From Octopus sinensis (taxonomy: Eukaryota), in NCBI RefSeq assembly GCF_006345805.1, contig NW_021832767.1, positions 1 through 32,768 of the forward strand: a DNA stretch of 32,768 nt. The letters are read 5' to 3'. The notes under the pieces were generated by a model that was given only the letters and a program-made list of their open reading frames with translations, did no database searches and was not told the origin of the DNA. Below are positions 3,462 through 30,859 of this stretch, in pieces. The position numbers were made by a program, and so were the translations under genes. Each line of letters opens with the position of its first letter. Position 1 is the first letter of the stretch.

Positions 3462-3705
3462 ACGCGGAAAAGTTTTACGTCAAACGGAAAACACATCAAT
3501 TGACTTAGCAAAGCCATGTGATGAAATTAACTCAAAGCACTACATATGTATAAGTAGCTACAGCTCGTTCTAACCATTTCTCTTATTTCTGTAAAATGAA
3601 TTGTGGAAGCAAATTTCAGAGAAGAAACTGGATGAGTTAATTTCATCACATGGCTTTACTAAGTCAATTGATGTGTTTTCCGTTTGACTTAAAACTTTTC
3701 CGCGT
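3462..3705. repeat. Foldback/MITE-like inverted repeat, 73-bp arms, 98-bp spacer
   Basis: 3462-3534 is the reverse complement of 3633-3705 with 2 mismatches; no TSD recognised. Confidence 0.9.
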
Positions 3706-4629
3706 GGGGCTAAAAATAATCAGAGATTTTTTAAAATATTCTTTTTATTTTTTCATAACATAAATGTGTTTCTGAGGGAAAAATATTGAAAAACATCAAA
3801 TCATTGAATGAGAAAAAATAGAGAAGACAAGGAGAGTGGTGTGCTAGAAACAACAGCCAAATCTCCCTTAAATCACGCACTTTTTCCCTCGACCCCTTAC
3901 AAAACATTTTGCCAACAAATTTCTTTTAATGGTAATCTACATCGTTTGAAAGTTATTTCTATAAAATTTCATTCAAAAATACCCATTTTCCTGAAATTTA
4001 TGAGGAGGGGAAATGTCTGGTTGTGTGAATTTTGCGAAACTCCTTTCCGCAACCCTTCAGAAAATGTTTTTCCAACAAATCCTTACAAATGCTCAATCTA
4101 TAGGATCTAAGCGATTATTTGTTGAAAGTTTCCTTCAAAAAATATCTATTTTTCTGCAAGTTACGAGGAAACAAAGTCGGTGGGGGTATATATCTGTAGT
4201 TATGCCGAATTTGCTTCCTCACAACTTCCGCAAAATTAAATATTTTTTAATGAAATTTTCTACAAATATTCTTCAGATGGTTTAGATTCCGATTAAATCG
4301 GAATTCACTGTGAAAACCGTTTGTCCCTGGGTGGGAAAAGAAGTTTTAGAAAATTCACAAGATTCGCCTTTGTTATGAAAGACAAAAAAGTTTTCCCAAT
4401 AAATCCCCATAGAATCGGAATCTACACCATCTGAAGCATATTTGTAGGAAATTCCATGAAAAATATCCATTTCTCTGCAAGTTATTACGGAAGAAACATA
4501 CACATCATAAAGGAACATTTATACACATGTATATTTATATATACCTACATATACACACATGTCTTTGCTATGTTTTTTAAACACATAAACTTCATAGATG
4601 CATACTTTTATAATATTTTACACTTAAAC

Positions 4630-5010
4630 CGCCACAGGACAATATTTTTAGAGTTGCTTCTTAAAGTGTCCTTCACTTTTTTGATGACAAACGATACAAA
4701 TTTCAGTGTATTTGGCTGTTATTTCTAGCATGATGTTAGGCCATCTATAGGACAATATTTGACATGGATGCTTCGCAAATTGTCTTTCGATTTTTATTTG
4801 TGATGAAACAAAAATGTGAAGGTTTAGGTGGTTCTTTCTAGCATGAAATGAGACCATATACAGGCCAATTTCATTCATGAATGCTTCTTATCTGTTCTTC
4901 AAAATTTATATGAAAAATAAAGTGGTTTCTATTTCTAGCATGAAAAATGACCAGCTATAGGAAAGCTTTTACTGAATGCTTCTTAAAGTGTCCTTCTCTT
5001 TTTTTATGAA
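4630..5010. repeat. Degenerate tandem repeat, ~100-113 bp period
   Basis: TTTCTAGCATGA recurs at 4722, 4835 and 4932; GCTTCTTAAAGTGTCCTTC recurs near 4656 and 4978. Confidence 0.7.
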
Positions 5011-5017
5011 CCCCCAA

Positions 5018-5294
5018 CAGCAACAACAATAACAACCCTACGAGGATGAAAGGCAATGTTTGTGCGTGTGTGCAGTTGGAATGTCACTGCAACAACAACA
5101 ACAACAACAATCTATTCTTATTAAACGTTAAAAACTGTCAGATGCAGACTGATGATGAAGACGATGATGATGATGATGGTGATGATGACGATGATGATGA
5201 TGATGATGATGATGGCGGTGATGACGATGATGGTGGTGGCGGCGGCGGTGGTCGTCTCCTCTGCTTTCGGACCAGACATTCATACATACATGCA

Positions 5295-5333
<39 letters not shown>

Positions 5334-5460
5334 TATATATATATACACAAACATACATACATACTTCTAGCCTTATTTCTATACATACATTCCTAAATAT
5401 GTGTGTATATATATATAAACACATGTACATAAACTGTATATAAATATACACACACAAAGA
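5018..5460. repeat. Microsatellite block (CAA)n, (GAT)n, (GGC)n, (TA)n, (TACA)n
   Basis: Direct reading; explains the poly-D/M/H/S ORFs in the track. Confidence 0.95.
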
Positions 5461-5606
5461 GAGTGTTGAGGAATGTTACAACAATAAGTGTTAGTATGTA
5501 GAATGCAATGTATGCGATGCAGGTTCGATTCCCAGGCGAAGCCATTTACAACAACAACAACAATAAGAAGAAGAAGAAGATTGAAGTTTAATATTTCTGG
5601 AAATAT

Positions 5607-5940
5607 TTATTTGTCAAAATAAAAGAAAGCAAAAGATTGACGTCCAGGAATAATTCCAAAAACCATCAAAGAATTGTCTGAAACATCCAAACCAAGAACT
5701 TCAGAGACTTCATTATCATACCCTCTAAGGAGTAAATATTTTCGATTATCTTTAAATCCCAGGATTTCATCGTCTTCAGATGTTTCCTCTTCAATATGTC
5801 GAGGTATTTCGTAAATATTGTTTCTTGTATCTGTTACATAAACACATTCACCAATTATGGTCAGATAAGGTCTTGCAATATAATAATATGGCAGATGAGA
5901 AAACCATCCTCCTTCTATTATTATCCTCCTCACCAAAGAC
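5607..5940 (-). CDS. True C-terminus of the propeller gene, in a shifted frame
   Basis: KSLVRRIIIEGGW...PYLTIIGECVYVTDTRNNIYEI is blade-like. It joins WFRG of the long ORF if one base is removed from the GGGGAAAA run (5941-5948). Confidence 0.7.
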
Positions 5941-8900
5941 TTTTCCCCTGAACCATTCCACAAAACACAAAATATCCCACCCTCCATACTCCTTCTCCTC
6001 CATCTCCCTCCTCAAAACAACAACATCACCAAAAGATGTGACTCCCACATCTTCCACCCCTTCATCTCCCTCCAACCTTCCCAATCTCCTCATCTTCCCA
6101 CGACACACTTCATCTTTACATTTCCCATCTTTGATATCAACCACATCCACATAATAACGGTCAAAGATGTCGGGGTCATCGCAATAATAGAAATCCTTGT
6201 TGTTCTCCCATCTTCTATGGTATTTCTTGTCTCTCTCTTCTTGAGTTATGTCTCTAATATAATGACCACCACACACGAGTTGATTGTCGTATTTATAAAT
6301 CCTGTTGTAGAATTTCTCAGTTATGATGGTTTTTAAACGACGGAGATCCCTGTTGAAGACCCTCATTTCTCTCCCAAAGGCGACAATGAAACATTCCTCT
6401 GTCCACCGACATATATCCAGTGCTGGTCGTTTTTGTTGTTCATGTTGAAGCATGTCCACTGTTGTTGTTGTTGTTGTTCTGATTAATGTGACACTTTCTC
6501 GAAACATCAACACACTCACATTCTCATCTAACTTAATTAGTTTACTGTTCCGGTCCCTAATGTCCATCAAATCATAATCAACAGGTTCCTCGAATGCAGG
6601 AATGGAAAAAGGGACCATTGCTGTCCTATATGGAAGTCTCCTCACTGATATTTCATCAATTCCTGAATTATTAATCTCCGCTATGTAATTACCACATCTC
6701 ACCTTTAATCTACCTTTACCAATTATTTCACCTGATTTACCTCTTCTTCTTCTTCCTCCTCCATCTCCATCTCCTCCTCTGTATTCCAATTTATTAATTA
6801 ATTCATTACTGAATATTTCCTTGTTCATTTCAGATGTAATGGAAGGGAAACGAAGACTAGAATCAAGATTTAATAACGACACAGATTCCAGAATGTTCAC
6901 TTGGTCCCCATCAATCTTTATGCAATGACAGTCAATCAATTCATTATGTACACACCAGTAAATACCCGCCACTTTTCTCCATATTACACCATAAGGGATG
7001 AGACTCAACCAAACTTGAGATGTCTGCAAATCTTCTCCATTCAGTTGAAATATTTCTTTCCTTTTAGGAACCGTGGCCATTATGTGTGATTCTTGTGTAA
7101 AACACACACCACCAACTAAACTTGCAACATTTCTGTGACATAGCAACTGGCCGTCTTCATCGAATATTTTAATATTTCCATTATTGGCTTTTTCACACAC
7201 AACTGTCTTTCCTTCCTCAGAGGCATCAAAATCTTTTACTTGAACAGGACATTCGTCTGTTTGTAAACGAGCAACCGGGAAGCTGTCTCGATTCACCATA
7301 AACAACCCTTCAACATACAATTCATTCCTTTCTTCCCTCCTGGGGCTTCCAACAAATCTTGGTCCTTTACAGTCTATACTGGAGAATTCTATTTTATCTT
7401 TATAAAATCTTTCATTTAAAAATATTCTCTTGTATTCCCTATTCTGGGTCAAACACAAAATGTTTTGATATGCAGATATAGTAAAATTTGTATCCCACCC
7501 ACCATAAATGTACAAAAAACTGTCATCAATTGTCATCCTGTCATCACTACCAAGATAATCATAATTCATGTAGTGTCTGACTGAATGTAAATATTGACCA
7601 TCACTGTTGAAGAAAATGATGAATCTGTTGTTTAAGACAATGATGACATTTTCATCAGTAACTTTAATATCCTGGATTTCATCAGAACAAACTCCATCTT
7701 CGTTTCTCAATATTAATTGTCCAGGTATGTCTATTTTTTTTATTTCCTCCACACTCGAACGTATTTCATCAATATCAACAAAATGCAAACGTCTTACATC
7801 TCCACTTTCACTCAAAACCAATTGATTGTTTGATAAAGAAGCCACACATTTATAATCATTTCTCGTTTGGTAAGTTACCAACGACAATGGAAATTCCACT
7901 TTTAATGTCAACAGTTGGGGTTTGTTACCAAAATAATCCCAATCCGTAGTAATGACCAGTGTGTTTGACTGCCATCGACACATTTTAATATATTCATCAA
8001 CATTCACTTTGATTGAATCCAAAAGCTGACCATCCAATGTGAATATCTTAATGTTTCCATTCTCCCAGTCACATCCTGCAATCAGATTATTTTCAGTAAG
8101 AACCAAACGATCAATCTCCACTGGTTCTTCGTCTCCCAAATGTTCAGGGAGAGGAATATGTCTGGCTTTATCAGAAACTGTCAGGTCCTGTAGATATAAA
8201 GTGGAAGACAACATTTCACTGAGAGAAATGTTTCTGGAAAATACATCCACCAGGTCGATATAATAATTAAGTTGATTATTAGTAACGAGATCATTAACCA
8301 ACAAATTCTGATCGTTTATGGCAAACATACGGCTTCTGTCTATCAGATAAACAGACGTTTGATCAATAGATCCACCTTGGAGACTGAGGGGACGTTTCAC
8401 TTGGGACATTAAAACACTGGGGACCATTCTACTAAAATAACGATATCTAGTTCTACCACCACGAAGACGATGACCACGACCACGAAGAGGACGACTGCCA
8501 TGACCACCACCACCTATTGTAGTGTTGTACTGAAAAGCTTTTCCCCTAGTAACAATTAATAGCTTTTCTGTTTTCTTGTCTATTGATAATGATTTCACAA
8601 AAACGGGGATATTAATTGTCTTAATTACTTCAATTTGATTATAATAATTGATGGCTAAAATGTCTAAATGTGATGTTTTATCACAATAACAAACAATTTC
8701 ACGTTCACCCATCTTACACACCTGTACATAAGGCTGCCTTAATGATACACTTCTCACTGTCTTTGATAGGTTTCTGATGACCCTTAATTGTTTCTGTAGG
8801 GGTAATGTGACCCCTATATGATTTGAATCCCATCGACATATATCTGTGGCTGTAGACGGCAGAGATAATCTGGACACAATGTCTCCTTCCTCAGAAATGT

Positions 8901-9651
8901 ACATCAAGCAATCATGCTTGATGTCAGACACCACCAACTGTCCATTGGACAGATTACATATTTTGCCAATGACAAGTTTTTGGTCATTCTCCTTTTCTTT
9001 GAGTCGTAGATTTAGATTTCTGATATAAGGATTTTTCGTGGGTAAACGACAGCCAGACGACCAGTCTTGATACTTGTAAAGAAGAACCCTGTTGAGTTGA
9101 GTGTCCGGGACATAAAGAGTTCCTTGGAAAACAGCAATGTGAGGGTGAACTGGGAAAGGCAGTTCCCACTGCCATTTCATTTGTCCATATAGATCGTAAC
9201 ATCTGAGAATAGAGTGTCTCCTGAAGAGGACATAGAAATAAACATTATCAGAGTAGATGTGATGAGGGTGGCCATAGAATGGAAGGTATTTTTGAAAAAG
9301 TTCTTCACCACATGTGGAATAAAATATCATTTTATTTTCACTTCCATCTACGACTACAAAATTAATTGGAGTTGCAGCAATGCTGACATTATGATGTCCC
9401 AGAGAAATTCTTTCTGCAATGTCAACTTTATCTTCATTGATCAAGAGGATATGGACCTCACTTTTGTTTTCAGTGGTGGTCACAGCTAAACACTTATTTG
9501 ATACAATATACATTTTCATGTAATCAGTTTGCACCTTTATTAAAGGGCCTTTTCTCAATTCAGGACAAGGTGATATACTGAATCCTTTAATTTCACGGTA
9601 AAATACCAGGAATCTGTTTGCGTTTATTCTACAACAGAAGAGGAAGCTCAA
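5848..9651 (-). CDS. Uninterrupted 1267-codon core of the multi-propeller gene (first ATG at 9519)
   Basis: 3.8 kb ORF in AT-rich DNA. Propeller starts near aa 228 (IGKICNLSNGQLVVSD...TDICRWDSNHIGVTLP), 512 (IDRLVLTENNLIAGCDWENGNIKIF...KMCRW), 803 (VKDFDASEEGKTVVCEKANNGNIKIF) and ~1035 (...LDICRW). These resemble the C-terminal NHL-like propellers of expanded mollusc TRIM proteins. Confidence 0.85.
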   Translation of the reverse strand: MSFLFCCRINANRFLVFYREIKGFSISPCPELRKGPLIKVQTDYMKMYIVSNKCLAVTTTENKSEVHILLINEDKVDIAERISLGHHNVSIAATPINFVVVDGSENKMIFYSTCGEELFQKYLPFYGHPHHIYSDNVYFYVLFRRHSILRCYDLYGQMKWQWELPFPVHPHIAVFQGTLYVPDTQLNRVLLYKYQDWSSGCRLPTKNPYIRNLNLRLKEKENDQKLVIGKICNLSNGQLVVSDIKHDCLMYISEEGDIVSRLSLPSTATDICRWDSNHIGVTLPLQKQLRVIRNLSKTVRSVSLRQPYVQVCKMGEREIVCYCDKTSHLDILAINYYNQIEVIKTINIPVFVKSLSIDKKTEKLLIVTRGKAFQYNTTIGGGGHGSRPLRGRGHRLRGGRTRYRYFSRMVPSVLMSQVKRPLSLQGGSIDQTSVYLIDRSRMFAINDQNLLVNDLVTNNQLNYYIDLVDVFSRNISLSEMLSSTLYLQDLTVSDKARHIPLPEHLGDEEPVEIDRLVLTENNLIAGCDWENGNIKIFTLDGQLLDSIKVNVDEYIKMCRWQSNTLVITTDWDYFGNKPQLLTLKVEFPLSLVTYQTRNDYKCVASLSNNQLVLSESGDVRRLHFVDIDEIRSSVEEIKKIDIPGQLILRNEDGVCSDEIQDIKVTDENVIIVLNNRFIIFFNSDGQYLHSVRHYMNYDYLGSDDRMTIDDSFLYIYGGWDTNFTISAYQNILCLTQNREYKRIFLNERFYKDKIEFSSIDCKGPRFVGSPRREERNELYVEGLFMVNRDSFPVARLQTDECPVQVKDFDASEEGKTVVCEKANNGNIKIFDEDGQLLCHRNVASLVGGVCFTQESHIMATVPKRKEIFQLNGEDLQTSQVWLSLIPYGVIWRKVAGIYWCVHNELIDCHCIKIDGDQVNILESVSLLNLDSSLRFPSITSEMNKEIFSNELINKLEYRGGDGDGGGRRRRGKSGEIIGKGRLKVRCGNYIAEINNSGIDEISVRRLPYRTAMVPFSIPAFEEPVDYDLMDIRDRNSKLIKLDENVSVLMFRESVTLIRTTTTTTVDMLQHEQQKRPALDICRWTEECFIVAFGREMRVFNRDLRRLKTIITEKFYNRIYKYDNQLVCGGHYIRDITQEERDKKYHRRWENNKDFYYCDDPDIFDRYYVDVVDIKDGKCKDEVCRGKMRRLGRLEGDEGVEDVGVTSFGDVVVLRREMEEKEYGGWDILCFVEWFRGKVFGEEDNNRRRMVFSSAILLYCKTLSDHNW

Positions 9652-10185
9652 GGAAAACTAATTACTCTGGCTAATTATTTCCCCGTTATCAGTGAATAAT
9701 TTAGCTTTCTTGTTTTTGTAAATTATTAATATAGAAGATGTAGACATAGGTTAGAATATTTGTAATGTTGTAGCAATCCTCAAATCAATATAGTCTTTTA
9801 AAACTGGGGGTATGTAGCTGGTGGTTGTATGACTTTGGGCCAAAAGTCTTTATTCATTTGAATACCATGTGGTTTGCCGCAATAATCTGTTACCAAAATG
9901 GTATCTTTACCAACAGAAAATAGAGCAGCATTTCTGCCAATGTCCCTCCTTGTTACACCGCCGTAGCTGAAATCCTATAAATTATTTTCCCTGGAGGACA
10001 TAGAAATAATTTTGGTACAGAGAGATTTTACTTGGGAGGTGCAGAGAATGGTCTCTACTTCCCATAACTGTTGGCATCCAGTTTGTAACAGATTACTCTG
10101 TTGATGCTGGCGAATGTATTACAAGTATATTCTGGACACCCCTACAGCAAGATCTGTAGGGGTTTCTTTGGTAATAAATTGATAG

Positions 10186-10821
10186 TTATGGTATTTCCTC
10201 CCAATCAAATTGGTAAACTATCTTACCAAACATTTCTACACCTATAAGTGTAGAATCTTCTAAGTAACTCACCATATGTAACGCCAACTGTATCCTTTTG
10301 ATCTTAAAGGTTTTAGGGCTGATAATAAGAATCATTTCTTGGAAGGGGAGGGTTGCCAGAACCATGTCTTCACTGATTCTGGTGAAACTGGTCACAGAAG
10401 ATGGACAATGGACATCAATTCTATCACTGTCTCTTGTTACTAAACTTATAGTCTTGCAGTGGTGGGAATATGTCATCACTCCCTCCTCTATAATGACAAT
10501 ATTGGATATTATTGTCCCTTCTTCAAATTCTTCTCCAGATTCCTCAATATTTGCTTCTCTAGTCACAACTGGCTGAAGAGACCGAAATTTATTTTTGGTT
10601 ATTTTTGTTGTGTGAATGGTTTTCCATCTGTATGGATTGCTGGTGACGGAAATGTCAAAGAGTCTTTGTTGAAACCATTCGAGGTCCTGCTGAATAGAAA
10701 TATTCTGTTCTTTAGTATATTTCAGCAAAATTCCAAGTCTCTCTTTGACCTTTTCTAAAATACAATTGGCCCTTAATCCCAGACTTTCATAATGTTTGCT
10801 CTCCTTAACTATATGCTCCAT
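10186..10821 (-). CDS. Coiled-coil linker plus start of first propeller unit
   Basis: Helical segment (LEKVKERLGILLKYTKEQNISIQQDLEWFQQRL), then ISNIVIIEEG...VTSFTRISEDMVLATLPFQEMILII, matching the repeat start; same frame as the 1267-aa ORF. Confidence 0.75.
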   Translation of the reverse strand: MEHIVKESKHYESLGLRANCILEKVKERLGILLKYTKEQNISIQQDLEWFQQRLFDISVTSNPYRWKTIHTTKITKNKFRSLQPVVTREANIEESGEEFEEGTIISNIVIIEEGVMTYSHHCKTISLVTRDSDRIDVHCPSSVTSFTRISEDMVLATLPFQEMILIISPKTFKIKRIQLALHMVSYLEDSTLIGVEMFGKIVYQFDWEEIP

Positions 10822-11207
10822 AACATCAGGCAGCGATCATATTGAAGACGAATCCTCTGTATTTAGCAATTTTGTTTTTTCAGTTTCTTTTGTGCTTTCT
10901 TTGTCTCCAGATATGGCCTTCACTGCTGATTCTCTCTCTGAACTAACCATACTATTGTCAGTCTGGTCTTCCATAGTGAATCTGTAAAGAAATATAAGGA
11001 AAACATTTAGCTTTGTGAAAATATTAAAGTTTCAGGGAGAGATGTTTGCTTCATCATTTGAAAAACACAAACAAAACATTTATGTATTTCTGTCAGTGAA
11101 TTAATCTTGTCTAATTAATATCAACAACTTATTACAATCTATTCTAAGATGTATTAATAGTTTCATTAATTACATGGAGTCTAAATATTAGAATAAATTA
11201 TTTTTAC

Positions 11208-11330
11208 TGGAAATGATATTTGCTCTCAACATCACAAAAATGAGTCATGTGTGGCTTAGATTTATTTAACGATAATTTGTCAAAGAGATTCCCCTGCTCC
11301 CAAAAGCACTCAATAACGAGACACTCTAAG
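11208..11330 (-). CDS. Candidate upstream 123-nt coding exon of the propeller gene
   Basis: Acceptor TTTTCTCTACAG and donor CA|GTAAAA. Only one frame is open (LECLVIECFWEQGNLFDKLSLNKSKPHMTHFCDVESKYHF), and it splices in phase to the 10981 exon (CA+A TTC ACT ATG). Confidence 0.45.
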
Positions 11331-11559
11331 CTGTAGAGAAAATTAACTTTAATTGGTGTTCATGCTATATTATGTCCCAACACACAGCAATCATGTTCAA
11401 ACTTCGTTAACATGGAACAATTAGCAAAACATAGACTTTATTATGCTTCATAGACATTTGTCAGATACAAGACAGACTGAACATTCATATCTATAAACAT
11501 ACAGAGACACAAATATTTATACTTGGGTATGTGAAGGTATATATATGTATATATATATA

Positions 11560-12625
11560 CATATATTCCAACGATCACCTTGCTGTTTGTGTCCCTGTAC
11601 ACTGCTTGAACGGCTCACCGACAACTCGTCTAACCCTAGTTTCAGCATTGATGCCGAGATAAGGGATCGGGGGCCCCTGTCAAAGGCTTTCTCCAAGTCA
11701 ACAAAAGCCAAGTACAGAGGTTTATTTTTGGTTACATATCTTCTCTTTGTTGTAGAGATAGCACTAAATCGCGTGTCCAACAGAAATCGAATGGATAGTT
11801 GTAGAACTCTCTAGAATATTTCTATTGACAGATTTAGATGTAGCACTCTCCATAACACTCCTGAAGCTTCCCTTCCAGAAATATAGCATCAGAGGTGCTT
11901 CTCACTGGCACCACAAACCAAAGTGCATCTCTTCTAGACTAACTCTCTCCCTAATTAGTTTGGTAGGACCCTCTCTTCAACTTCATCATTTGATTCAACA
12001 ATTGATACCTCTGCAATTATTCCTATCTAAAGCATCACTTCCCATTTGTAGCAGTTCACTATGGTGCTGCTACACCAGTCATTGGGTATGACTCCTTCGT
12101 GAACACTTGATATGAGTGAGTAGACCATTATCCACACATGCCAAGATATTTTAAGGATCTCAGCAGTGATTCCTGATGGGCCGGGGCCTTTCCCTGTTTA
12201 CATATTCTTAATTGCTTTATCTATCAAGATACTGTCACTTTGGATAGCTGGTCCCTCATTGGGTCAACATTTGGCAGACTCTCCTCCCATTCATTCTCCA
12301 CGTCCAGCAGTCTTTCAATGGAATTTCTAAGCCTCTTTCCTTGCCAAATCATTAAATGCTAGTGAACCATCATCCATGTGGACACATTTCTCTCCTATGA
12401 CATCACAAATCTCTCTCATACACTGTCTTGCATTCCAAAACACTTCAAGACTCTGGTTCTCATGTCGCTAAACATAGGCAAACTTCTTTTCTGCTTCTCT
12501 CTTGGCTAGATAGACCTGTCCCCTAGCTTTCCTTCTGGTTATCTGATACGGTTTCCTCCTACCCCCAATCTTCTTTGCTCTAATGGCCTTCTCAACAGCA
12601 TTGTTCCTCTACCATGTCACCCTAG
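11560..12625 (-). mobile_element. RTE-clade LINE fragment, decayed (linker to RT N-terminal half)
   Basis: KPLYLAFVDLEKAFDR; homologous to 17000-17790 of the younger RTE copy; many frameshifts. Confidence 0.85.
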
Positions 12626-15787: not shown

Positions 15788-17787
15788 GTTTAACGTCCGT
15801 TTTCCGCGCTAGCACGGGTTGGATGGTTCGACCGGGGTCTGGGAAGCCAGGGGCCGCACCAGGCTCCAGTCTGATCTGGCAGAGTTTCTACGGCTGGATG
15901 CCCTTCCTAACGCCAACCACTCCGTGAGTGGAGTGGGTGCTTTTTACGTGCCACCTGCACAGGGTCCGGGGGGTCCGGCATCGGTCATGATCGGTTCGAG
16001 CTTTTAACGTGCCAGCGGCACGGGGGCAACGGGATCCGGGGTACTTTGAATGGGTAGGGGGTATGTGGAATTGCTGCAGAAAGCAGCCCGGGTCTTTGCA
16101 GTCACAGCATATCTCCAGAGATCTCGGTCCTTCGCCATTGCCTCAGTGAGGCCCAATGCTCTGAGGTCATGCTTGACTACTTCATCCCATGTCTTCCTGG
16201 GTCTACCTCTCCCTCTGATACCTTCAACTGTTTGGGAGTGGCACTTCTTCACACATCTCTCTTCATCCATCCGCAGCACATGACCATACCATCGCAAGCG
16301 TCGCTCTTGCACTCCACATCTGATGCTTCTTATATCCAGCATTTCTCTCAGGATGCTTACACTCTGTCTTGCGTGCACACTGACACTACACATCCAGCGG
16401 ATCATGCTAGCTTCATTTCTTTCAAGTCTACGCATGTCCTCTGCAGTCACAGCCCATGTTTCATTACCGTGAAGCATGGCAGTTCGCACACATGAATCAT
16501 ACAGTCTACCTTTCACTCTGAGGGAGAGACCTTTTGTTGCCAGTAGGGGTAGGAGCTTTCTGAACTTTGCCCAGGCTATTCGTATTCTAGTGGTGATACT
16601 CTCTGTGCATCCACCTCCGCTACTAACTTGGTCACCCAGGTAGCGGAAACTATCAACTACTTCTAGTTTCTCTCCCTGGAGTGTGATGGAATCTGTTTTC
16701 TGAGTGTCTGTTGTGTCTATTGTCCCTGTGCATCTGCCGCACATGAAAGCTATCTTATCTGTTAATTTCCCTTTAAGTTGCTGCACCTCTTATGTGTCCA
16801 TAGCTTACATTGGGTGCATCTTATGGAGTTTCTACCTGTACCTTTCTTACAGATTGAACAGGGCCACCTACCCGAGGGGGTGTGTGCTGAGTACCTCTTG
16901 CTGCTTACTAATACTTTGGTCTTTGCTACATTTATTCTAAGGCCCTTTGATTCTAACCCTTGCTTCCACACCCGAAATTTCTTTTCTAGTTCCGGTAGTG
17001 ATTCTGCTATGAGAGCTAGGTCATCGGCATAGAGGAGCTCCCAGGGGCATCCCATTTTGAATTCCTCTGTTATTGCCTGAAGGACTATGATGAATAAAAG
17101 GGGACTGAGGGCTGAGCCCTGGTGCACACCTACTTCTACTGGAATTCTTCACTATATTCGTTGCCAATCCTAACCTTGCTGACAGCCTCTCTGTAGAGCC
17201 TGTACAGCCCTTATTAGCCATTCGTCAATCTCCAGTTTCCACATCGACCACCAGATAAGGGAACGGGGAACCCTGTCAAAGGCTTTCTCCAAGTCTACAA
17301 AAGCTATGTAGAGGGGTTTATCTTTAGCTAGGTCTTCTCCTGCAGTTGTCGGACCAGGAATATAGCATCAGTGGTGCTTCTACCTGGTACAAACCGAACT
17401 GCATTTCATCTAAACAAATCTCTCCCTAATGAGATGGGTTATGACCTTCTCTGAGACCTTCATCACCTGGTCCAACAGTTTGATACCTCTGTAGTTATTT
17501 CTATCTAGAGCATCACCCTTACCCTTGTAGCAGTTGATTATGGTGCTGCTGCACCAGTCATTGGGTATGACTCCATTGTGAACTACCTGGTTTACAATGC
17601 GGGTGACTATGGCATAGCCCACATAGCCAGCTGTTTTAAGCATCTCAGCAGTGATTCCTGATAGGCCAGGGGCTTTGCTTGGTTTCATATCCTTAATTGC
17701 CTTATCTACAAGGGAGCTGTCTATTCGGGTAGCTGGTCCCTCTACTGGGTCAACATTTGGCAGGCTCTCCTCCTCCCATTCATTCTC

Positions 17788-17791
<4 letters not shown>
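15765..17791 (-). mobile_element. 5'-truncated RTE-clade LINE with RT, PHD-like finger, 3' UTR and (GAT)n tail; several frameshifts
   Basis: KAPG...TAEMLK, NYRGIKLLDQVMK, HQGSALSPLLF, LLYADDLAL, VDSFRYLG, RRLRWYGHVLR, RGRGRPRKTW; tail GGACGTTAAAC(GAT)n. Confidence 0.95.
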
Positions 17792-17835
<44 letters not shown>

Positions 17836-17836
17836 C

Positions 17837-17880
<44 letters not shown>

Positions 17881-17956
17881 CATATACATATACATATACA
17901 TATATATATATATATAATATATATATATATTATATATATATATATATACATATATA
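17792..17956. repeat. (TA)n/(TACATA)n microsatellite
   Basis: Direct reading. Confidence 0.95.
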
Positions 17957-23722: not shown

Positions 23723-23763
<41 letters not shown>

Positions 23764-24049
23764 ATTTCAACAATTGAGGGTAAAATTAATTAATTAATCA
23801 ATTTCACCAAGTATTCAGTATACAAAGGGACCATTTAAGGCGAATTCAAATTATTACATTATATAAAAGGGCTTAGTAAAATAAATTACTTTGCCGCATA
23901 CTGAACTCATTAGAAATAGCAGCTAAAAAAAACTTTTTTAAAAACTATTTCCAATACTTAAAGAAAACCTCTCTCATATAGTGTTTGCTCAATTCAACTC
24001 ACAAAAGTATGGGGGTAGAGACATTAAAAAATCAAATGCAAAGGTTATT

Positions 24050-24102
24050 TGAGAACATACGTTTCAAGATTAGTCAAAATCGACACTTCTATCATCAGCT
24101 CA
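24050..24102 (-). ncRNA. Type I hammerhead-ribozyme-like motif (copy 1, stem III loop variant GTAT)
   Basis: TGAG-CTGATGA-stemII-GAAA-C-GTAT-GTT-CTCA. Confidence 0.55.
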
Positions 24103-24608
24103 GAACTCCCTGGTTTGGATTTGAAAACACTGAAAGTGGGAGCATACCCTTTCGGCTTGTTATCACTTCTGAAGATCTGCTCAAAACTAACAGTGCCAGC
24201 AAATTCAAATATGCAAGCGAAGAATTTCTGCTCTCCCCTTACCACCAGCGTGGGTTAAAATCAGCAAACACTATGCTTTTTTTGGTAAAATCCGAGGCAT
24301 TATATAGAGAGAGATGAATTATAATTTCAACAATTGAGGGTAAAATTAATTAATTAATCAATTTCACCAAGTATTCAGTATACAAAGGGACCATTTAAGG
24401 CGAATTCAAATTATTACATTATATATAAGGGCTTAGTAAAATAAATTACTTTGCCGCATACTGAACTCATTAGAAATAGCAGCTAAAAAAACTTTTTTAA
24501 AAACTATTTCCAATACTTAAAGAAAACCTCTCTCATATAGTGTTTGCTCAATTCAACTCACAAAAGTATGGGGGTAGAGACATTAAAAAATCAAATGCAA
24601 AGGTTATT

Positions 24609-24661
24609 TGAGAACGTACGTTTCAAGATTAGTCAAAATCGACACTTCTATCATCAGCTCA
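24609..24661 (-). ncRNA. Type I hammerhead-ribozyme-like motif (copy 2)
   Basis: TGAG-CTGATGA-26 nt-GAAA-CGTAC-GTT-CTCA. Confidence 0.6.
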
Positions 24662-25167
24662 GAACTCCCTGGTTTGGATTTGAAAACACTGAAAGTGGGA
24701 GCATACCCTTTCGGCTTGTTATCACTTCTGAAGATCTGCTCAAAACTAACAGTGCCAGCAAATTCAAATATGCAAGCGAAGAATTTCTGCTCTCCCCTTA
24801 CCACCAGCGTGGGTTAAAATCAACAAAAACTATGCTTTTTTCGGTAAAATCCGAGGCATTATATAGAGAGAGATGAATTATAATTTCAACAATTGAGGGT
24901 AAAATTAATTAATTAATCAATTTCACCAAGTATTCAGTATACAAAGGGACCATTTAAGGCGAATTCAAATTATTACATTATATAAAAGGGCTTAGTAAAA
25001 TAAATTACTTTGCCGCATACTGAACTCATTAGAAATAGCAGCTAAAAAAACTTTTTTAAAATCTATTTCCAATACTTAAAGAAAACCTCTCTCATATAGT
25101 GTTTGCTCAATTCAACTCACAAAAGTATGGGGGTAGAGACATTAAAAAATCAAATGCAAAGGTTATT

Positions 25168-25220
25168 TGAGAACGTACGTTTCAAGATTAGTCAAAATCG
25201 ACACTTCTATCATCAGCTCA
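25168..25220 (-). ncRNA. Type I hammerhead-ribozyme-like motif (copy 3)
   Basis: Identical to copy 2. Confidence 0.6.
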
Positions 25221-25549
25221 GAACTCCCTGGTTTGGATTTGAAAACACTGAAAGTGGGAGCATACCCTTTCGGCTGAATACTTGGTGAAATTGATTAATT
25301 AATTAATTTTACCCTCAATTGTTGAAATTATAATTCATCTCTCTCTATATAATGCCTCGGATTTTACCGAAAAAAGCATAGTGTTTGCTGATTTTAACCC
25401 ACGCTGGTGGTAAGGGGAGAGCAGAAATTCTTCGCTTGCATATTTGAATTTTCTGGCACTGTTAGTTTTGAGCAGATCTTCAGAAGTGATAACAAGCCGA
25501 AAGGGTATGCTCCCACTTTCAGTGTTTTCAAATCCAAACCAGGGAGTTC

Positions 25550-25602
25550 TGAGCTGATGATAGAAGTGTCGATTTTGACTAATCTTGAAACGTACGTTCT
25601 CA
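25550..25602 (+). ncRNA. Type I hammerhead-ribozyme-like motif (copy 4)
   Basis: Stem I TGAG (25550-53)/CTCA (25599-602); CTGATGA 25554-60; GAAA 25587-90; palindrome ACGTACGT; GUU triplet 25596-98. Confidence 0.6.
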
Positions 25603-26109
25603 AATAACCTTTGCATTTGATTTTTTAATGTCTCTACCCCCATACTTTTGTGAGTTGAATTGAGCAAACACTATATGAGAGAGGTTTTCTTTAAGTATTG
25701 GAAATAGTTTTTAAAAAAGTTTTTTTTAGCTGCTATTTCTAATGAGTTCAGTATGCGGCAAAGTAATTTATTTTACTAAGCCCTTTTATATAATGTAATA
25801 ATTTGAATTCGCCTTAAATGGTCCCTTTGTATACTGAATACTTGGTGAAATTGATTAATTAATTAATTTTACCCTGAATTGTTGAAATTATAATTCATCT
25901 CTCTCTATATAATGCCTCGGATTTTACCGAAAAAAGCATAGTGTTTGCTGATTTTAACCCACGCTGGTGGTAAGGGGAGAGCAGAAATTCTTCGCTTGCA
26001 TATTTGAATTTGCTGGCACTGTTAGTTTTGAGCAGATCTTCAGAAGTGATAACAAGCCGAAAGGGTATGCTCCCACTTTCAGTGTTTTCAAATCCAAACC
26101 AGGGAGTTC

Positions 26110-26162
26110 TGAGCTGATGATAGAAGTGTCGATTTTGACTAATCTTGAAACGTACGTTCTCA
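26110..26162 (+). ncRNA. Type I hammerhead-ribozyme-like motif (copy 5)
   Basis: Identical to copy 4, 560 bp downstream. Confidence 0.6.
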
Positions 26163-26355
26163 AATAACCTTTGCATTTGATTTTTTAATGTCTCTACCCC
26201 CATACTTTTGTGAGTTGAATTGAGCAAACACTATATGAGAGAGGTTTTCTTTAAGTATTGGAAATAGTTTTTAAAAAAGTTTTTTTAGCTGCTATTTCTA
26301 ATGAGTTCAGTATGCGGCAAAGTAATTTATTTTACTAAGCCTTTTATATAATGTA

Positions 26356-28689: not shown

Positions 28690-29307
28690 ATGACTAAACA
28701 CGGCATTGTTGTTAACAATCGTTGTTGTGACACATCATTTTGCAACAGTGATGCTGAATAATTAAATTCGCTTTTCCACAAAGGGATCATCTCAATCAAT
28801 TCTGTGCAACAATCGATAAAATGAATTTATAGATTCATTTACAAATGGAATGTGTCACACCATCTTAAAAATTCGTGTATTGCGTTCTTTTACACAGATT
28901 AGGAAAAACAAGGGAATATTTTTAAGTAAAAGAATTTATAAAGATGAAGTAGATTTCTTCAGTATTGACTGTAAAGGATCAAGGTTTGTTGGAAGCGCCA
29001 TGAGGGGAGAAAGGAATGAATTGTATGTTGAAGGGTTGTTTATGGTGAATCGAGACAGCTCCCCGGTTGCTCGTTTACAAACAGACGAATGTCCTGTTCA
29101 AGTAAAAGATTTTGATGTCTCTGAGGAAGGAAAGACAGTTGTGTGTGAAAAAGCCAATAATGGAAATGTTAAAATATTCAATGAAGACGGCCAGTTGCTA
29201 TGTCACAGAAATGTTGCAAGTTTAGTTGGTGGTGTGTGTTTTACACAAGAATCACACATAATGGCCACGGTTCCTAAAAGAACAGAAATATTTCAACTGA
29301 ATGGAGA
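28690..29307 (+). pseudogene. Truncated paralogue fragment of the propeller gene, inverted orientation
   Basis: IFLSKRIYKDEVDFFSIDCKGSRFVGS...HIMATVPKRTEIFQLNG aligns to aa ~740-872 of the long ORF; decayed homology (IVVNNR...NSD) further upstream; cut at 29307 by a SINE. Confidence 0.9.
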
Positions 29308-29309
29308 TT

Positions 29310-29355
29310 TTCAGACCATGTGGTTGGGAAGCAAACTTCTTAAAACACAGCCACT
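29310..29355 (-). mobile_element. SINE head fragment (32010 family)
   Basis: ACCATGTGGTTGGGAAGCAAACTTCTT...CACAGCCAC is the reverse complement of the SINE start. Confidence 0.7.
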
Positions 29356-29362
29356 TCGGCGC

Positions 29363-29402
<40 letters not shown>

Positions 29403-29407
<5 letters not shown>

Positions 29408-30859
29408 TAGATATGTTTCGACCAGAGATTGGTCCAGGCCATGTCTAACTTAATAGCACCACCTGATAGGATTATTCGAATCCTGTTTAAGTCAAGTTTT
29501 GTTCACGTAGTGAGTTCTTGTTGGGTGAGTTGTATCTAGTTTTGTTTAAGTAGTGAGTTCTTGTTGGGTGAGTTGTATCCAATTATGGGTGGCTTATCTG
29601 GTATTCTTTGAAGGAATCTATCCAGACTCTGTTTAAAGTTGATGGGATCCTTTTCCTCTTTGATCACCCTCGGGACAATGTTAAATAGGGCAGGCCCTGT
29701 TGAGGAAAAGAAATTATGTTGCAGTGTACATGTATGTTGTGATCTTGAATTGGACAGGGGACGTATAGCCAGTGGTCCAAGACTTGGATGAACCTTGAAG
29801 CTAATGTTTAGGTCATTTGGGCAAAGTTGGCGGTATATTTTCCACATCGTACAAATGATGTACCGCTCACGGCGACGCTGGAGGGAATAAAGTTTCAAGG
29901 CTTTAAGGCGATCCCAATAATCGAGAGCAGCCATGCCTTCAATTTGTTTAGTGAATGCCCTCTGGGGTGACTCAATTCTGGAGATGTTTTGTCTTGTATG
30001 GGGAGACCACAGTGGGCAGCAGTATTCAAGGTGTGGCCGTACAAAGGAGGAAAAAAGTGGTATGATGACACCTTGTTCTCTGGACCGGAAAGTTCTTAAG
30101 ATCCAGGAACTCATCCTACGAGCTATATCGACCTTCTTGTTGATGTGTGCACTCCAACTGAGATCGTCATCAACAATTACACCCAGGTCTCTGATATTGT
30201 TAGAGGCTGTGAGCGGTTCCCCTGAAGGAAGAGAGTATGGTTGTTTTAGTGAGGAATTTCTTCCAAAATGCATCAGCTCAAATTTTCCCTCATTCAGTTG
30301 CATTTTGTTTCTGTCTGTCCATTGACTCACAGCATATAGATCAGACTGGAGTTGAGTTCGGTCTGCTTCTTCATTGACGATTTGCTGGAGCTTAGTGTCA
30401 TCAGCAAATATTTTCACTTTGCAGTAATGCACGACACTGGAAAGGTCGTTTACGTAAATTATGAAGAGTAGCGGACCCAAAACAGTTCCCTGGGGAACAC
30501 CGCTGGTGACTTTTGCTGGGTTTGAGTGGACTCCATCAACTACAACATGTTGTGTTCTATTCGCCAGGAAATACTTAATCCAGTGTAGAACTTTCCCACG
30601 GATTCCAACGTTTGCCAATTTTGAAAGTAGGATGTTATGGTCTACCCTGTCGAACGCTTTACTGAAGTCAAGATATATGACGTCAGAGTTCGAACCTGTT
30701 CCCAAGGCTTTGAGTACATCTTCAATGTGGTGTAAGAGCTGTGGTTAGACAGTCCCTGCCACAGCGAAAGCCATGCTGATTTGCATTTAGGATTTGTGGG
30801 TCTCCAGGAAGTCAGCTATCCTGATCTTAACACTCTTTCAAACACTTTAATGATGTGGG

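Follow-up and report, generated by a model that had tools for sequence, protein, structure and literature searches.

The 32,768-nucleotide stretch of the Octopus sinensis genome analysed here (assembly GCF_006345805.1, contig NW_021832767.1, positions 1 to 32,768; hereafter the window) carries on its minus strand, between 10981 and 5607, one copy of a gene whose intact relatives encode large proteins predicted to consist of six consecutive beta-propeller-type units. An earlier note on this DNA, made from the letters alone, had outlined the region, and both of its end coordinates proved exact: 5607 is the end of the family stop codon (5607–5609, minus strand, placed by translation and paralog comparison and at the same position as in the paralogs P0001 and P0003), and 10981 is the first base past a polypyrimidine tract and a splice-acceptor-like CAG, with the ATG 7 nt further on at 10974–10972. 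These elements form a conserved 5' leader (10975–11031, minus strand: polypyrimidine tract, CAG, the 7 nt ATTCACT, then ATG; ...TTTCTTTACAG followed by ATTCACT and ATG), which over its aligned part is identical to the stretch preceding the open reading frame (ORF) of the intact paralog P0016 at locus L006, and which loci L009 and L011 also have in common.

Downstream of the leader, all on the minus strand, lie an N-terminal variable region (10510–10974), in which an in-frame TGA at 10839–10837 is followed by the next ATG at 10821 and whose helical segment ends ...LEWFQQRLFDISVTSNPY, and then six units (U1–U6), delimited here by the corresponding amino acids (aa) of P0003. Unit 1 (9790–10509; aa 189–433) starts ISNIVIIEEG and is frame-broken in its 3' half; unit 2 (8971–9789; aa 434–704) carries the motif FCCRIN; unit 3 (8125–8970; aa 705–967) carries DICRWD...IGVTLPLQKQL and a Gly/Arg-rich disordered loop; unit 4 (7246–8124; aa 968–1259), the hypervariable one, starts LVLTENNLIAGCDWENGNIKIFTLDGQLL; unit 5 (6547–7245; aa 1260–1489) starts VQVKDFD...NGNIKIFDEDGQLL and has the motif GVCFTQ and an RGG-like disordered loop; and unit 6 (5610–6546; aa 1490–1801) has the motif DICRWT and ends ...FAFFYFDK. 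The six motif strings named in the earlier note were all found on the minus strand (VTSFTRIS 10395–10372, FCCRIN 9639–9622, DICRWD 8844–8827, KMCRWQ 7986–7969, GVCFTQ 7110–7093 and DICRWT 6417–6400), each some 40–50 residues past the start of its unit, and the unit starts it proposed (10510, 9780, 8970, 8120, 7245 and 6550) fall a few bases from the boundaries obtained independently from AlphaFold2 secondary structure and profile alignment. A 60-nt in-frame insertion at ~8430–8489 (minus strand), specific to the window copy, lengthens the disordered Gly-rich loop of unit 3 by an Arg/Gly-rich stretch (…SRPLRGRGHRLRGGRTRYRY…); unit 5 keeps a similar conserved RGG-like loop, GGDGDGGGRRRRGKSGE.

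The frame of the window copy is not open. Translation yields the minus-strand pieces 11031–10840, 10836–10189, 10118–9978, 9974–9801, 9657–5851 and 6011–5610, among which 9657–5851 is an open frame of 1269 codons, or ~4 kb. Lesions were read from a DNA alignment to the nearest intact paralog, P0003 (locus L001; 91.9% identity). The in-frame TGA at 10839–10837 is codon 46, 45 codons past the ATG and within an N-terminal segment that is hypervariable among paralogs; a 630-nt patch (9568–10196, minus strand) holds ~19 frameshifting indels of 1–2 nt, with resulting frame switches and stops; and near 5948 a G run has one base too many, which places the last ~110 codons in another frame. Because of this early stop, indel patch and late frameshift, the window copy as assembled is unable to encode the full protein. 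The claim of ~1800 residues in a single exon, which the earlier note had made for this copy, stands for the intact relatives and is not borne out for the window copy as assembled.

These lesions could mean that the locus is a dead, decaying pseudogene, with the family possibly functional elsewhere, and we regard this as a serious prospect that falls somewhat short of an even chance. Around the copy there are also retroelement fragments and a detached piece of another family member, and a second broken copy is known in the Octopus vulgaris assembly (L006 on OX597841.1, 4144–9397, minus strand). Yet the indel patch is the region of highest substitution identity (97–98%, ~27 mismatches against 19 indels), and since such an indel-to-substitution ratio is typical of unpolished long-read sequence, and not of natural decay, the patch is more suggestive of sequencing error. 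What remains, ~4 kb, is the single open frame described above, and the early stop sits in the hypervariable N-terminus with another ATG 6 codons later. The ratio of nonsynonymous to synonymous divergence (dN/dS) against intact paralogs is 0.10–0.79 in units 1, 2, 3 and 5; outside the patch the copy behaves as a gene under constraint does, and values below 1 there suggest that any inactivation was recent. The window copy may thus be a pseudogene of recent date or an intact gene that was badly assembled, alternatives between which we do not choose, and its annotation as an intact gene should await a check of the reads.

The 1269-residue piece matches 65 proteins, every one of them octopod (O. 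vulgaris, O. sinensis, Octopus bimaculoides and Argonauta hians). All are annotated as 'uncharacterized' or 'hypothetical', and almost none carries a Pfam domain. Full-length members have ~1660–1910 aa, the best being 87% identical. On one 29.2-Mb chromosome record, which holds most of the O. vulgaris members, family members neighbour each other in tandem. A HMMER search of 1.84 billion representatives with a profile of U3–U6 returned just 42 proteins at E<=1e-3, ~29 of which (those at E<=1e-10, only some bearing an octopod name) were taken as family members or fragments. Both searches bear out the earlier suggestion that the family is lineage-specific. Its coding sequence is a single ~5.4-kb exon, uninterrupted in six of the six relatives compared with their DNA (P0003, P0001, P0058, P0053, P0022 and the Argonauta protein P0061). 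In P0016, P0007 and P0017 the gene model has the whole ORF in one block behind the same acceptor-like leader and spans 11–23 kb, so that an upstream non-coding exon is probable. At the O. vulgaris locus L006 the broken copy is split into three frames and lies beside intact P0016, and a further family member of 1783 aa follows ~5 kb downstream (38182–42927, plus strand); tandem arrays with broken copies are thus normal for the family. Since P0061 aligns over all six units, the six-fold duplication of the propeller probably preceded the divergence of Octopus and Argonauta. Among the paralogs there are two or more unrelated N-terminal types ('MEKINEEN…' and 'MEDQT…/MEAPR…'; window 10974–10510 compared with L001, L006, L009 and L011), of which the second follows the conserved acceptor and is the type of the window copy.

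The units are strongly diverged from one another: blastp of the pieces against each other gave one weak repeat pair only (E 2e-4), and profiles were needed to bring out the repeats. When unit profiles from a 23-sequence full-length family alignment were compared by hhalign, U3–U6 matched at E 1.4e-7, U4–U6 at 1.1e-6, U3–U4 at 1.8e-5 and U4–U5 at 2.3e-5, with weaker pairs involving U1 and U2; the N-terminal 188 residues matched no unit in the same comparison. At the level of profiles, the repetition of six units is judged to exceed chance.

AlphaFold2 was run on P0003, the nearest intact paralog, in two overlapping parts (aa 1–1000 and 941–1801, each with a 31-row family alignment), with a mean predicted local distance difference test score (pLDDT) of 64 for the first and of 72, with a predicted template modelling score of 0.67, for the second. 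The models contain six all-beta blocks (aa 190–410, 425–672, 705–855 and beyond, 955–1238, 1262–1382 and beyond, and 1460–1801), with beta-block pLDDT of ~84 in U1, ~83 in U2 and ~77 in U3; U3 and U5 are all-beta with low-confidence Gly/Arg-rich inserts. There are 23–24 strands each in U1 (23), U2 (24), U4 (24) and U6, which fits six four-stranded blades, and in U4 the N-terminal strand is available for closing the last blade. Foldseek matched the models to proteins in the PDB with two to many propellers (IFT-A subunits, LRP4, LRP2, Utp21, DDB1 and EML) at E 1e-21 to 1e-12 and sequence identities of 7–12%. Alignments covered ~850–1200 columns for DDB1 (both models) and for LRP4 and LRP2 (first model), and ~700–900 for two-propeller proteins such as Utp21. 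The protein is thus modelled as six consecutive propeller-type units, each of ~230–310 residues, in keeping with the separate propellers that the earlier note had expected of a structure prediction.

To which class of propeller the units belong was approached through profiles, a single-sequence search of PDB sequences with the 1269-aa piece having returned nothing meaningful. Pfam searches, here and below, covered the six window pieces and five intact relatives, and gave sub-threshold matches only, in the six-bladed clan (SGL, E 5e-4; DUF4934, E 1e-3). Four of the six unit profiles (U1, U3, U4 and U5) found weak PDB sequence matches that include the propellers of TRIM-NHL proteins (Brat, Thin, TRIM2, TRIM3 and TRIM71), and for U1, U3 and U4 these were the top class. 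All 12 matches of U4 were TRIM-NHL (E 0.002–0.6); U1 matched the NHL domains of Thin, Brat and TRIM71 (E 0.07–1), U3 matched TRIM2 only (E 1.2), and U5 matched Brat, TRIM2, TRIM3 and TRIM71 (E 4e-4 to 0.07) together with a repetitive Nostoc WD40 protein, 2ymu.

Among the 1.84 billion representatives, the nearest matches of the U3–U6 profile outside the family were P0089 (E 1.4e-6), then P0094, P0092 and P0096; the rest were cyanobacterial WD40 proteins with many repeated hits to one or two blades of U5. P0089 is CAE1315789.1 of the cuttlefish Acanthosepion (Sepia) pharaonis, with RING, B-box and NHL all above Pfam cut-offs. In P0096 the B-box passes and NHL falls just below (19.5 vs 20 bits), P0094 has NHL above the cut-off, and P0092 has no Pfam match. 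Aligned by hhalign to the single propellers of these four proteins, U4 reached an HH probability of 98.6% (E 8.5e-16, 214 of 261 columns), U3 97.9% (E 3e-13), U5 93.5%, U6 92% (E 6e-7) and U1 81% (E 1.2e-5, 173 columns); the N-terminus gave 0.1%. The units and the single cephalopod NHL propellers also have a second-blade motif in common, ICxW...VT(L/F/M)P. By these sequence criteria the units are best classed as divergent NHL propellers, and cephalopod TRIM-NHL (RING/B-box/NHL) proteins are their nearest relatives; the earlier note had called the propellers NHL-like from motifs. A word-index search with P0089 retrieved only classical filamin-type TRIM-NHL proteins at 25–26% identity, and no closer bridge sequences.

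The matches of U5 to 2ymu and to cyanobacterial WD40/nSTAND proteins raise another reading, that the units are WD40-type or generic propellers and their resemblance to NHL reflects convergent blade chemistry; many WD40 tandem propellers are likewise among the top Foldseek matches, and the Pfam NHL threshold is not reached. However, the WD40 matches span one or two blades, the E-value of 2ymu is inflated by its 11 near-identical repeats (for the single fragment 6r5x, E is only 5e-4), and Pfam WD40 has no match, the sole sub-threshold hit being ANAPC4_WD40 in P0030. Some 24 strands per unit suit six blades rather than seven, the hhalign alignments run in register with complete single NHL propellers over as many as 214 columns, and P0089, the nearest full-domain match, passes the Pfam NHL threshold. 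Only the first blades of U5 resemble 2ymu. In view of the strand counts, and of NHL alignments that keep register over the length of a domain, we dropped this reading as very unlikely.

The relationship to TRIM-NHL proteins seems to be confined to the propellers. Neither RING nor zf-B_box has a Pfam match in the window pieces or the five intact relatives, whereas P0089 shows both clearly and P0096 shows the B-box. The coiled coil that the earlier note had placed ahead of the propellers was not confirmed: AlphaFold2 gives P0003 only ~80 residues of short helices there (aa 64–145) at a pLDDT of ~50, and the N-terminal profile aligned to the B-box2/coiled-coil region of P0089, P0096 and P0092 with 0.5% probability, so without detectable similarity to a TRIM coiled coil. 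We had considered a remnant TRIM coiled coil for this region and dropped it on the same lack of similarity. Because RING, B-box and a recognisable coiled coil are not detected, the family itself appears, from sequence, not to be TRIM.

Compared with known systems, the closest are the TRIM-NHL proteins (Brat, LIN-41/TRIM71, TRIM2, TRIM3 and Thin/TRIM32), which belong to the same propeller family and include the closest sequence, P0089. The blade-1 turn N-x-I-K-(I/L)-F-x2-(D/N)-G and the blade-2 motif ICxW...VT(L)P occur in the units as in cephalopod NHL propellers. Whereas those proteins have one propeller, the octopod family has six and no detected RING, B-box, filamin domain or recognisable coiled coil; it is octopod-only, multi-copy, fast-evolving and below the Pfam NHL threshold, whereas Brat and LIN-41 are conserved single-copy regulators. 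LRP4 and LRP2/megalin resemble the family in having several six-bladed propellers per chain (Foldseek E ~1e-19 to 1e-17 over ~900–1040 columns, N-terminal half). LRPs act as receptors, either secreted or in the membrane, and have EGF and LA modules between their propellers; the octopod propellers, in contrast, are directly consecutive, with no signal peptide or membrane segment seen. The likeness to LRPs is structural only, at 9–10% sequence identity, and neither Pfam Ldl_recept_b nor EGF has a match in the pieces or the five relatives. DDB1, Utp21, the WD40 pairs of IFT-A and EML are chains of two or three propellers that match both halves (Foldseek E 1e-17 to 1e-12). Scaffolds of the DDB1 type are cytosolic binding platforms of seven-bladed WD40-type propellers (interdigitated in DDB1) that are ancient, single-copy and conserved, whereas the octopod protein has six NHL-type units in a lineage-specific expanding family. 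We found no description of the family in literature on octopus or cephalopod beta-propellers, NHL repeats, TRIM-NHL proteins or tandem propellers, nor did we find a eukaryotic chain of six NHL propellers described in an annotation, a Pfam family or a paper, which agrees with the earlier note's failure to recognise the architecture. It is a new architecture made from a known domain, restricted to octopods.

The units differ widely in how they evolve. Mean pairwise protein identity was taken from 11 close O. vulgaris paralogs, and dN/dS from recent pairs (dS<0.15; pairwise Nei–Gojobori) among seven intact coding sequences, with 10 recent pairs for U4 and U6 and 7–21 for the other units. The N-terminus is the most variable region of the family (54% identity), with dN/dS ~1 in pairwise comparisons. 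U1 (80%), U2 (91%), U3 (90%) and U5 (95%, the most conserved unit among close paralogs) have median dN/dS within 0.24–0.55, that of U2 being ~0.47, and U3 is the most invariant region across the family. In U4 (72% identity) dN/dS exceeds 1 in 10 of the 10 recent pairs, with a median of 1.54, and in U6 (74%) in nine of the 10, with a median of 1.39. The best single comparisons reach p=0.004–0.02, and the window copy against P0001 gives 3.2 in U4 (p=0.0014). We read dN/dS >1 in U4 and U6 as a consistent pattern that suggests positive selection, short of formal proof of it. Exchange among the copies is also likely. Against P0016, the window copy is 98% identical in 9384–8785 and 7203–6601 and 72–80% identical between them, and within a single pair of paralogs synonymous divergence varies up to ~19-fold from unit to unit; such abrupt shifts of identity and uneven synonymous divergence point to gene conversion or recombination among paralogs.

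The earlier note had proposed comparing dN/dS between blade faces, and in U4 this comparison singled out one face. On the AlphaFold2 strand map, the B–C and D–A loops of U4 have a mean pairwise difference of 0.50, against 0.15 in the A–B and C–D loops (Mann–Whitney p=3e-9), and the ratio of nonsynonymous to synonymous differences per site (pN/pS) is 1.4–3.3 on the variable face in 10 of 10 pairs and 0.24–1.2 on the other. That one face is involved is robust, because alternate loops face opposite sides under any labelling; calling it the canonical top face hangs on the chosen strand register. Units 1, 2 and 6 showed no one-face pattern in the same analysis, the strand register of U6 being uncertain.

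Beyond the gene, similarity to other copies extends on both sides. The 3' flank (3704–5606, minus strand) is 86–93% identical by blastn to L001, L005, L006, L008 and L009 and contains (GAT)n and (AT)n microsatellites. Those at 5139–5252, (GAT)n/(GGT)n, and at 5265–5460, (AT)n/(ACAT)n, give spurious poly-Asp, poly-His and poly-Ser ORFs. Exactly at the end of the 3' flank homology lies an inverted repeat (3462–3534 and 3633–3705), with 73-nt arms that are 97% complementary and 98 nt apart, forming a hairpin like that of a miniature inverted-repeat transposable element. The 5' flank (10982–11485, minus strand), putatively the end of an intron, is 95–96% identical to L006 and L009, and its homology ends just before a retroelement fragment that begins at ~11517. 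This short fragment with reverse-transcriptase motifs (11517–11780, minus strand) lies just upstream of the gene, and 11568–12487 has a counterpart of 95.5% identity 9 kb upstream of P0003.

Further along the window, a ~470-nt piece of a second family member stands detached at 28868–29341 (plus strand, inside the ORF 28850–29404); it corresponds to aa ~1183–1342, from the last part of unit 4 into the first part of unit 5, with 78–83% amino-acid identity by tblastn and 92–94% nucleotide identity to L001 and L006 by blastn. It adjoins a reverse-transcriptase ORF at 29536–30705 (minus strand). RVT_1 domains were found in this ORF and at 16004–17901 (minus strand), with E 4e-21 and 6e-12 respectively, one of them followed by a sub-threshold PHD/C1-like zinc-finger match. 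A satellite at 23761–26345, missed by Tandem Repeats Finder on account of its period of >500, has a unit of ~559–560 nt in copies mostly 98–100% identical, ~2.8 head to tail and then ~2 in the opposite direction; these form inverted repeats with arms of 232–635 nt and 99–100% complementarity.

With so many copies, an intronless coding sequence and reverse-transcriptase fragments adjoining, and with some annotated models (P0005, P0006) fused to transposon-related domains, the gene might be cargo of a mobile element, or itself selfish, multiplying by transposition. The protein, however, has no transposase, integrase or reverse-transcriptase domain in the Pfam searches of window pieces and five intact relatives. 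Copies have ~0.5 kb of 5' and ~1.9 kb of 3' flank in common, without terminal direct or inverted repeats at the ends of the unit, and lie in tandem on one chromosome like ordinary segmental duplicates; retro-copies in particular are disfavoured because a conserved splice acceptor precedes the ATG. Given a duplication unit of ~7.8 kb without terminal repeats and a protein without transposition domains, we rejected multiplication by transposition as highly unlikely.

The explanation that we consider best overall, and on balance probable, is an octopod-specific, tandemly duplicating family of six NHL-type propeller scaffolds derived from a TRIM-NHL ancestor. Several results weigh against it, and the window copy, with its stop at codon 46, ~19 frameshifting indels at 10196–9568 and 1-nt insertion near 5948, may be a dead pseudogene. 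The Pfam NHL family, like all others, stays below threshold in the six window pieces (none for NHL at E<=1) and the five intact relatives (E<=0.1). The matches to PDB sequences span single blades and are individually marginal (E 4e-4 to ~1), and the U2 and U6 profiles found nothing relevant among those sequences; U2 also has the weakest NHL link by hhalign (51%, 61 columns). AlphaFold2 confidence is low in parts of U3 (aa 857–957) and U5 (aa 1384–1459), and six closed six-bladed rings are deduced from strand counts and template coverage. Finally, the dN/dS pairs are non-independent in a family that recombines, and few single comparisons reach p<0.05.

How such a protein might act can be sketched as follows. 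A TRIM-NHL ancestor would have lost its E3-ligase half, and its propeller would have multiplied six-fold internally before the lineages of Octopus and Argonauta separated, leaving a chain of six propellers that could serve as a multivalent binding scaffold. The protein shows neither a signal peptide nor a membrane segment (maximum Kyte–Doolittle 19-residue mean 1.5) and is therefore probably cytosolic. The conserved propellers 2, 3 and 5 may hold common partners, with propellers 4 and 6 and the N-terminus giving paralog-specific recognition of a fast-changing ligand, RNA or protein, in the manner of a restriction factor or sensor; propeller 4 at least would diversify on one face. Ligand binding is a proposal, as are a sensor function and any immune role, both of which the earlier note had suggested. 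Values of dN/dS >1 in propellers 4 and 6, together with the hypervariable face of propeller 4, lend the sensor proposal indirect support, and a role in defence or conflict would fit the combination of tandem expansion, gene conversion, broken copies and dN/dS >1. A functional analogy, and no more than that, may be drawn with restriction factors of the TRIM5alpha type: both would be TRIM-derived, and both are paralog-rich, with a recognition domain that diversifies in surface loops at dN/dS >1.

Taken to its furthest, this proposal describes a new cytosolic recognition class from a TRIM-NHL ancestor, in which conserved propellers would serve signalling or assembly and positively selected faces of U4 and U6 would form a germline-encoded repertoire against viruses, transposons or other fast-evolving targets, diversified by tandem duplication and gene conversion among dozens of paralogs. 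In that full form we hold it to be rather unlikely. The same low standing applies to a different role, that of post-transcriptional regulators like Brat and LIN-41, whose propellers would bind RNA motifs, with paralogs differing in their targets, in development or neurons and not in defence. The units are homologous to TRIM-NHL propellers, and the NHL domain of Brat is reported to bind RNA directly (PMC4015489); with Gly/Arg-rich disordered loops of RGG-like type in units 3 and 5 as well, RNA makes a reasonable candidate ligand, and an extra RG-rich insert is present in the window copy. Yet the net charge of units 4–6 is negative (–3, –5 and –8) and that of units 1–3 only slightly positive, and conserved developmental regulators do not as a rule have dN/dS >1 and dozens of copies from tandem expansion, with broken ones frequent among them.

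A few large lineage-specific expansions are a known feature of cephalopod genomes, and for most octopus genes labelled 'uncharacterized' there is no structural or evolutionary assignment. The present family gains both, at the strength argued above: a fold, six NHL-type propellers per chain, and an origin, TRIM-NHL minus the ligase half. It also gains a testable functional layout, in which propellers 2, 3 and 5 are conserved and propellers 4 and 6 diversify, with one hypervariable face. Should the variable faces not be recognition surfaces, the family would still offer an unusual architecture for structural study; if they are, it would represent a new germline-diversified binding repertoire of invertebrates and a model for how NHL propellers change specificity.

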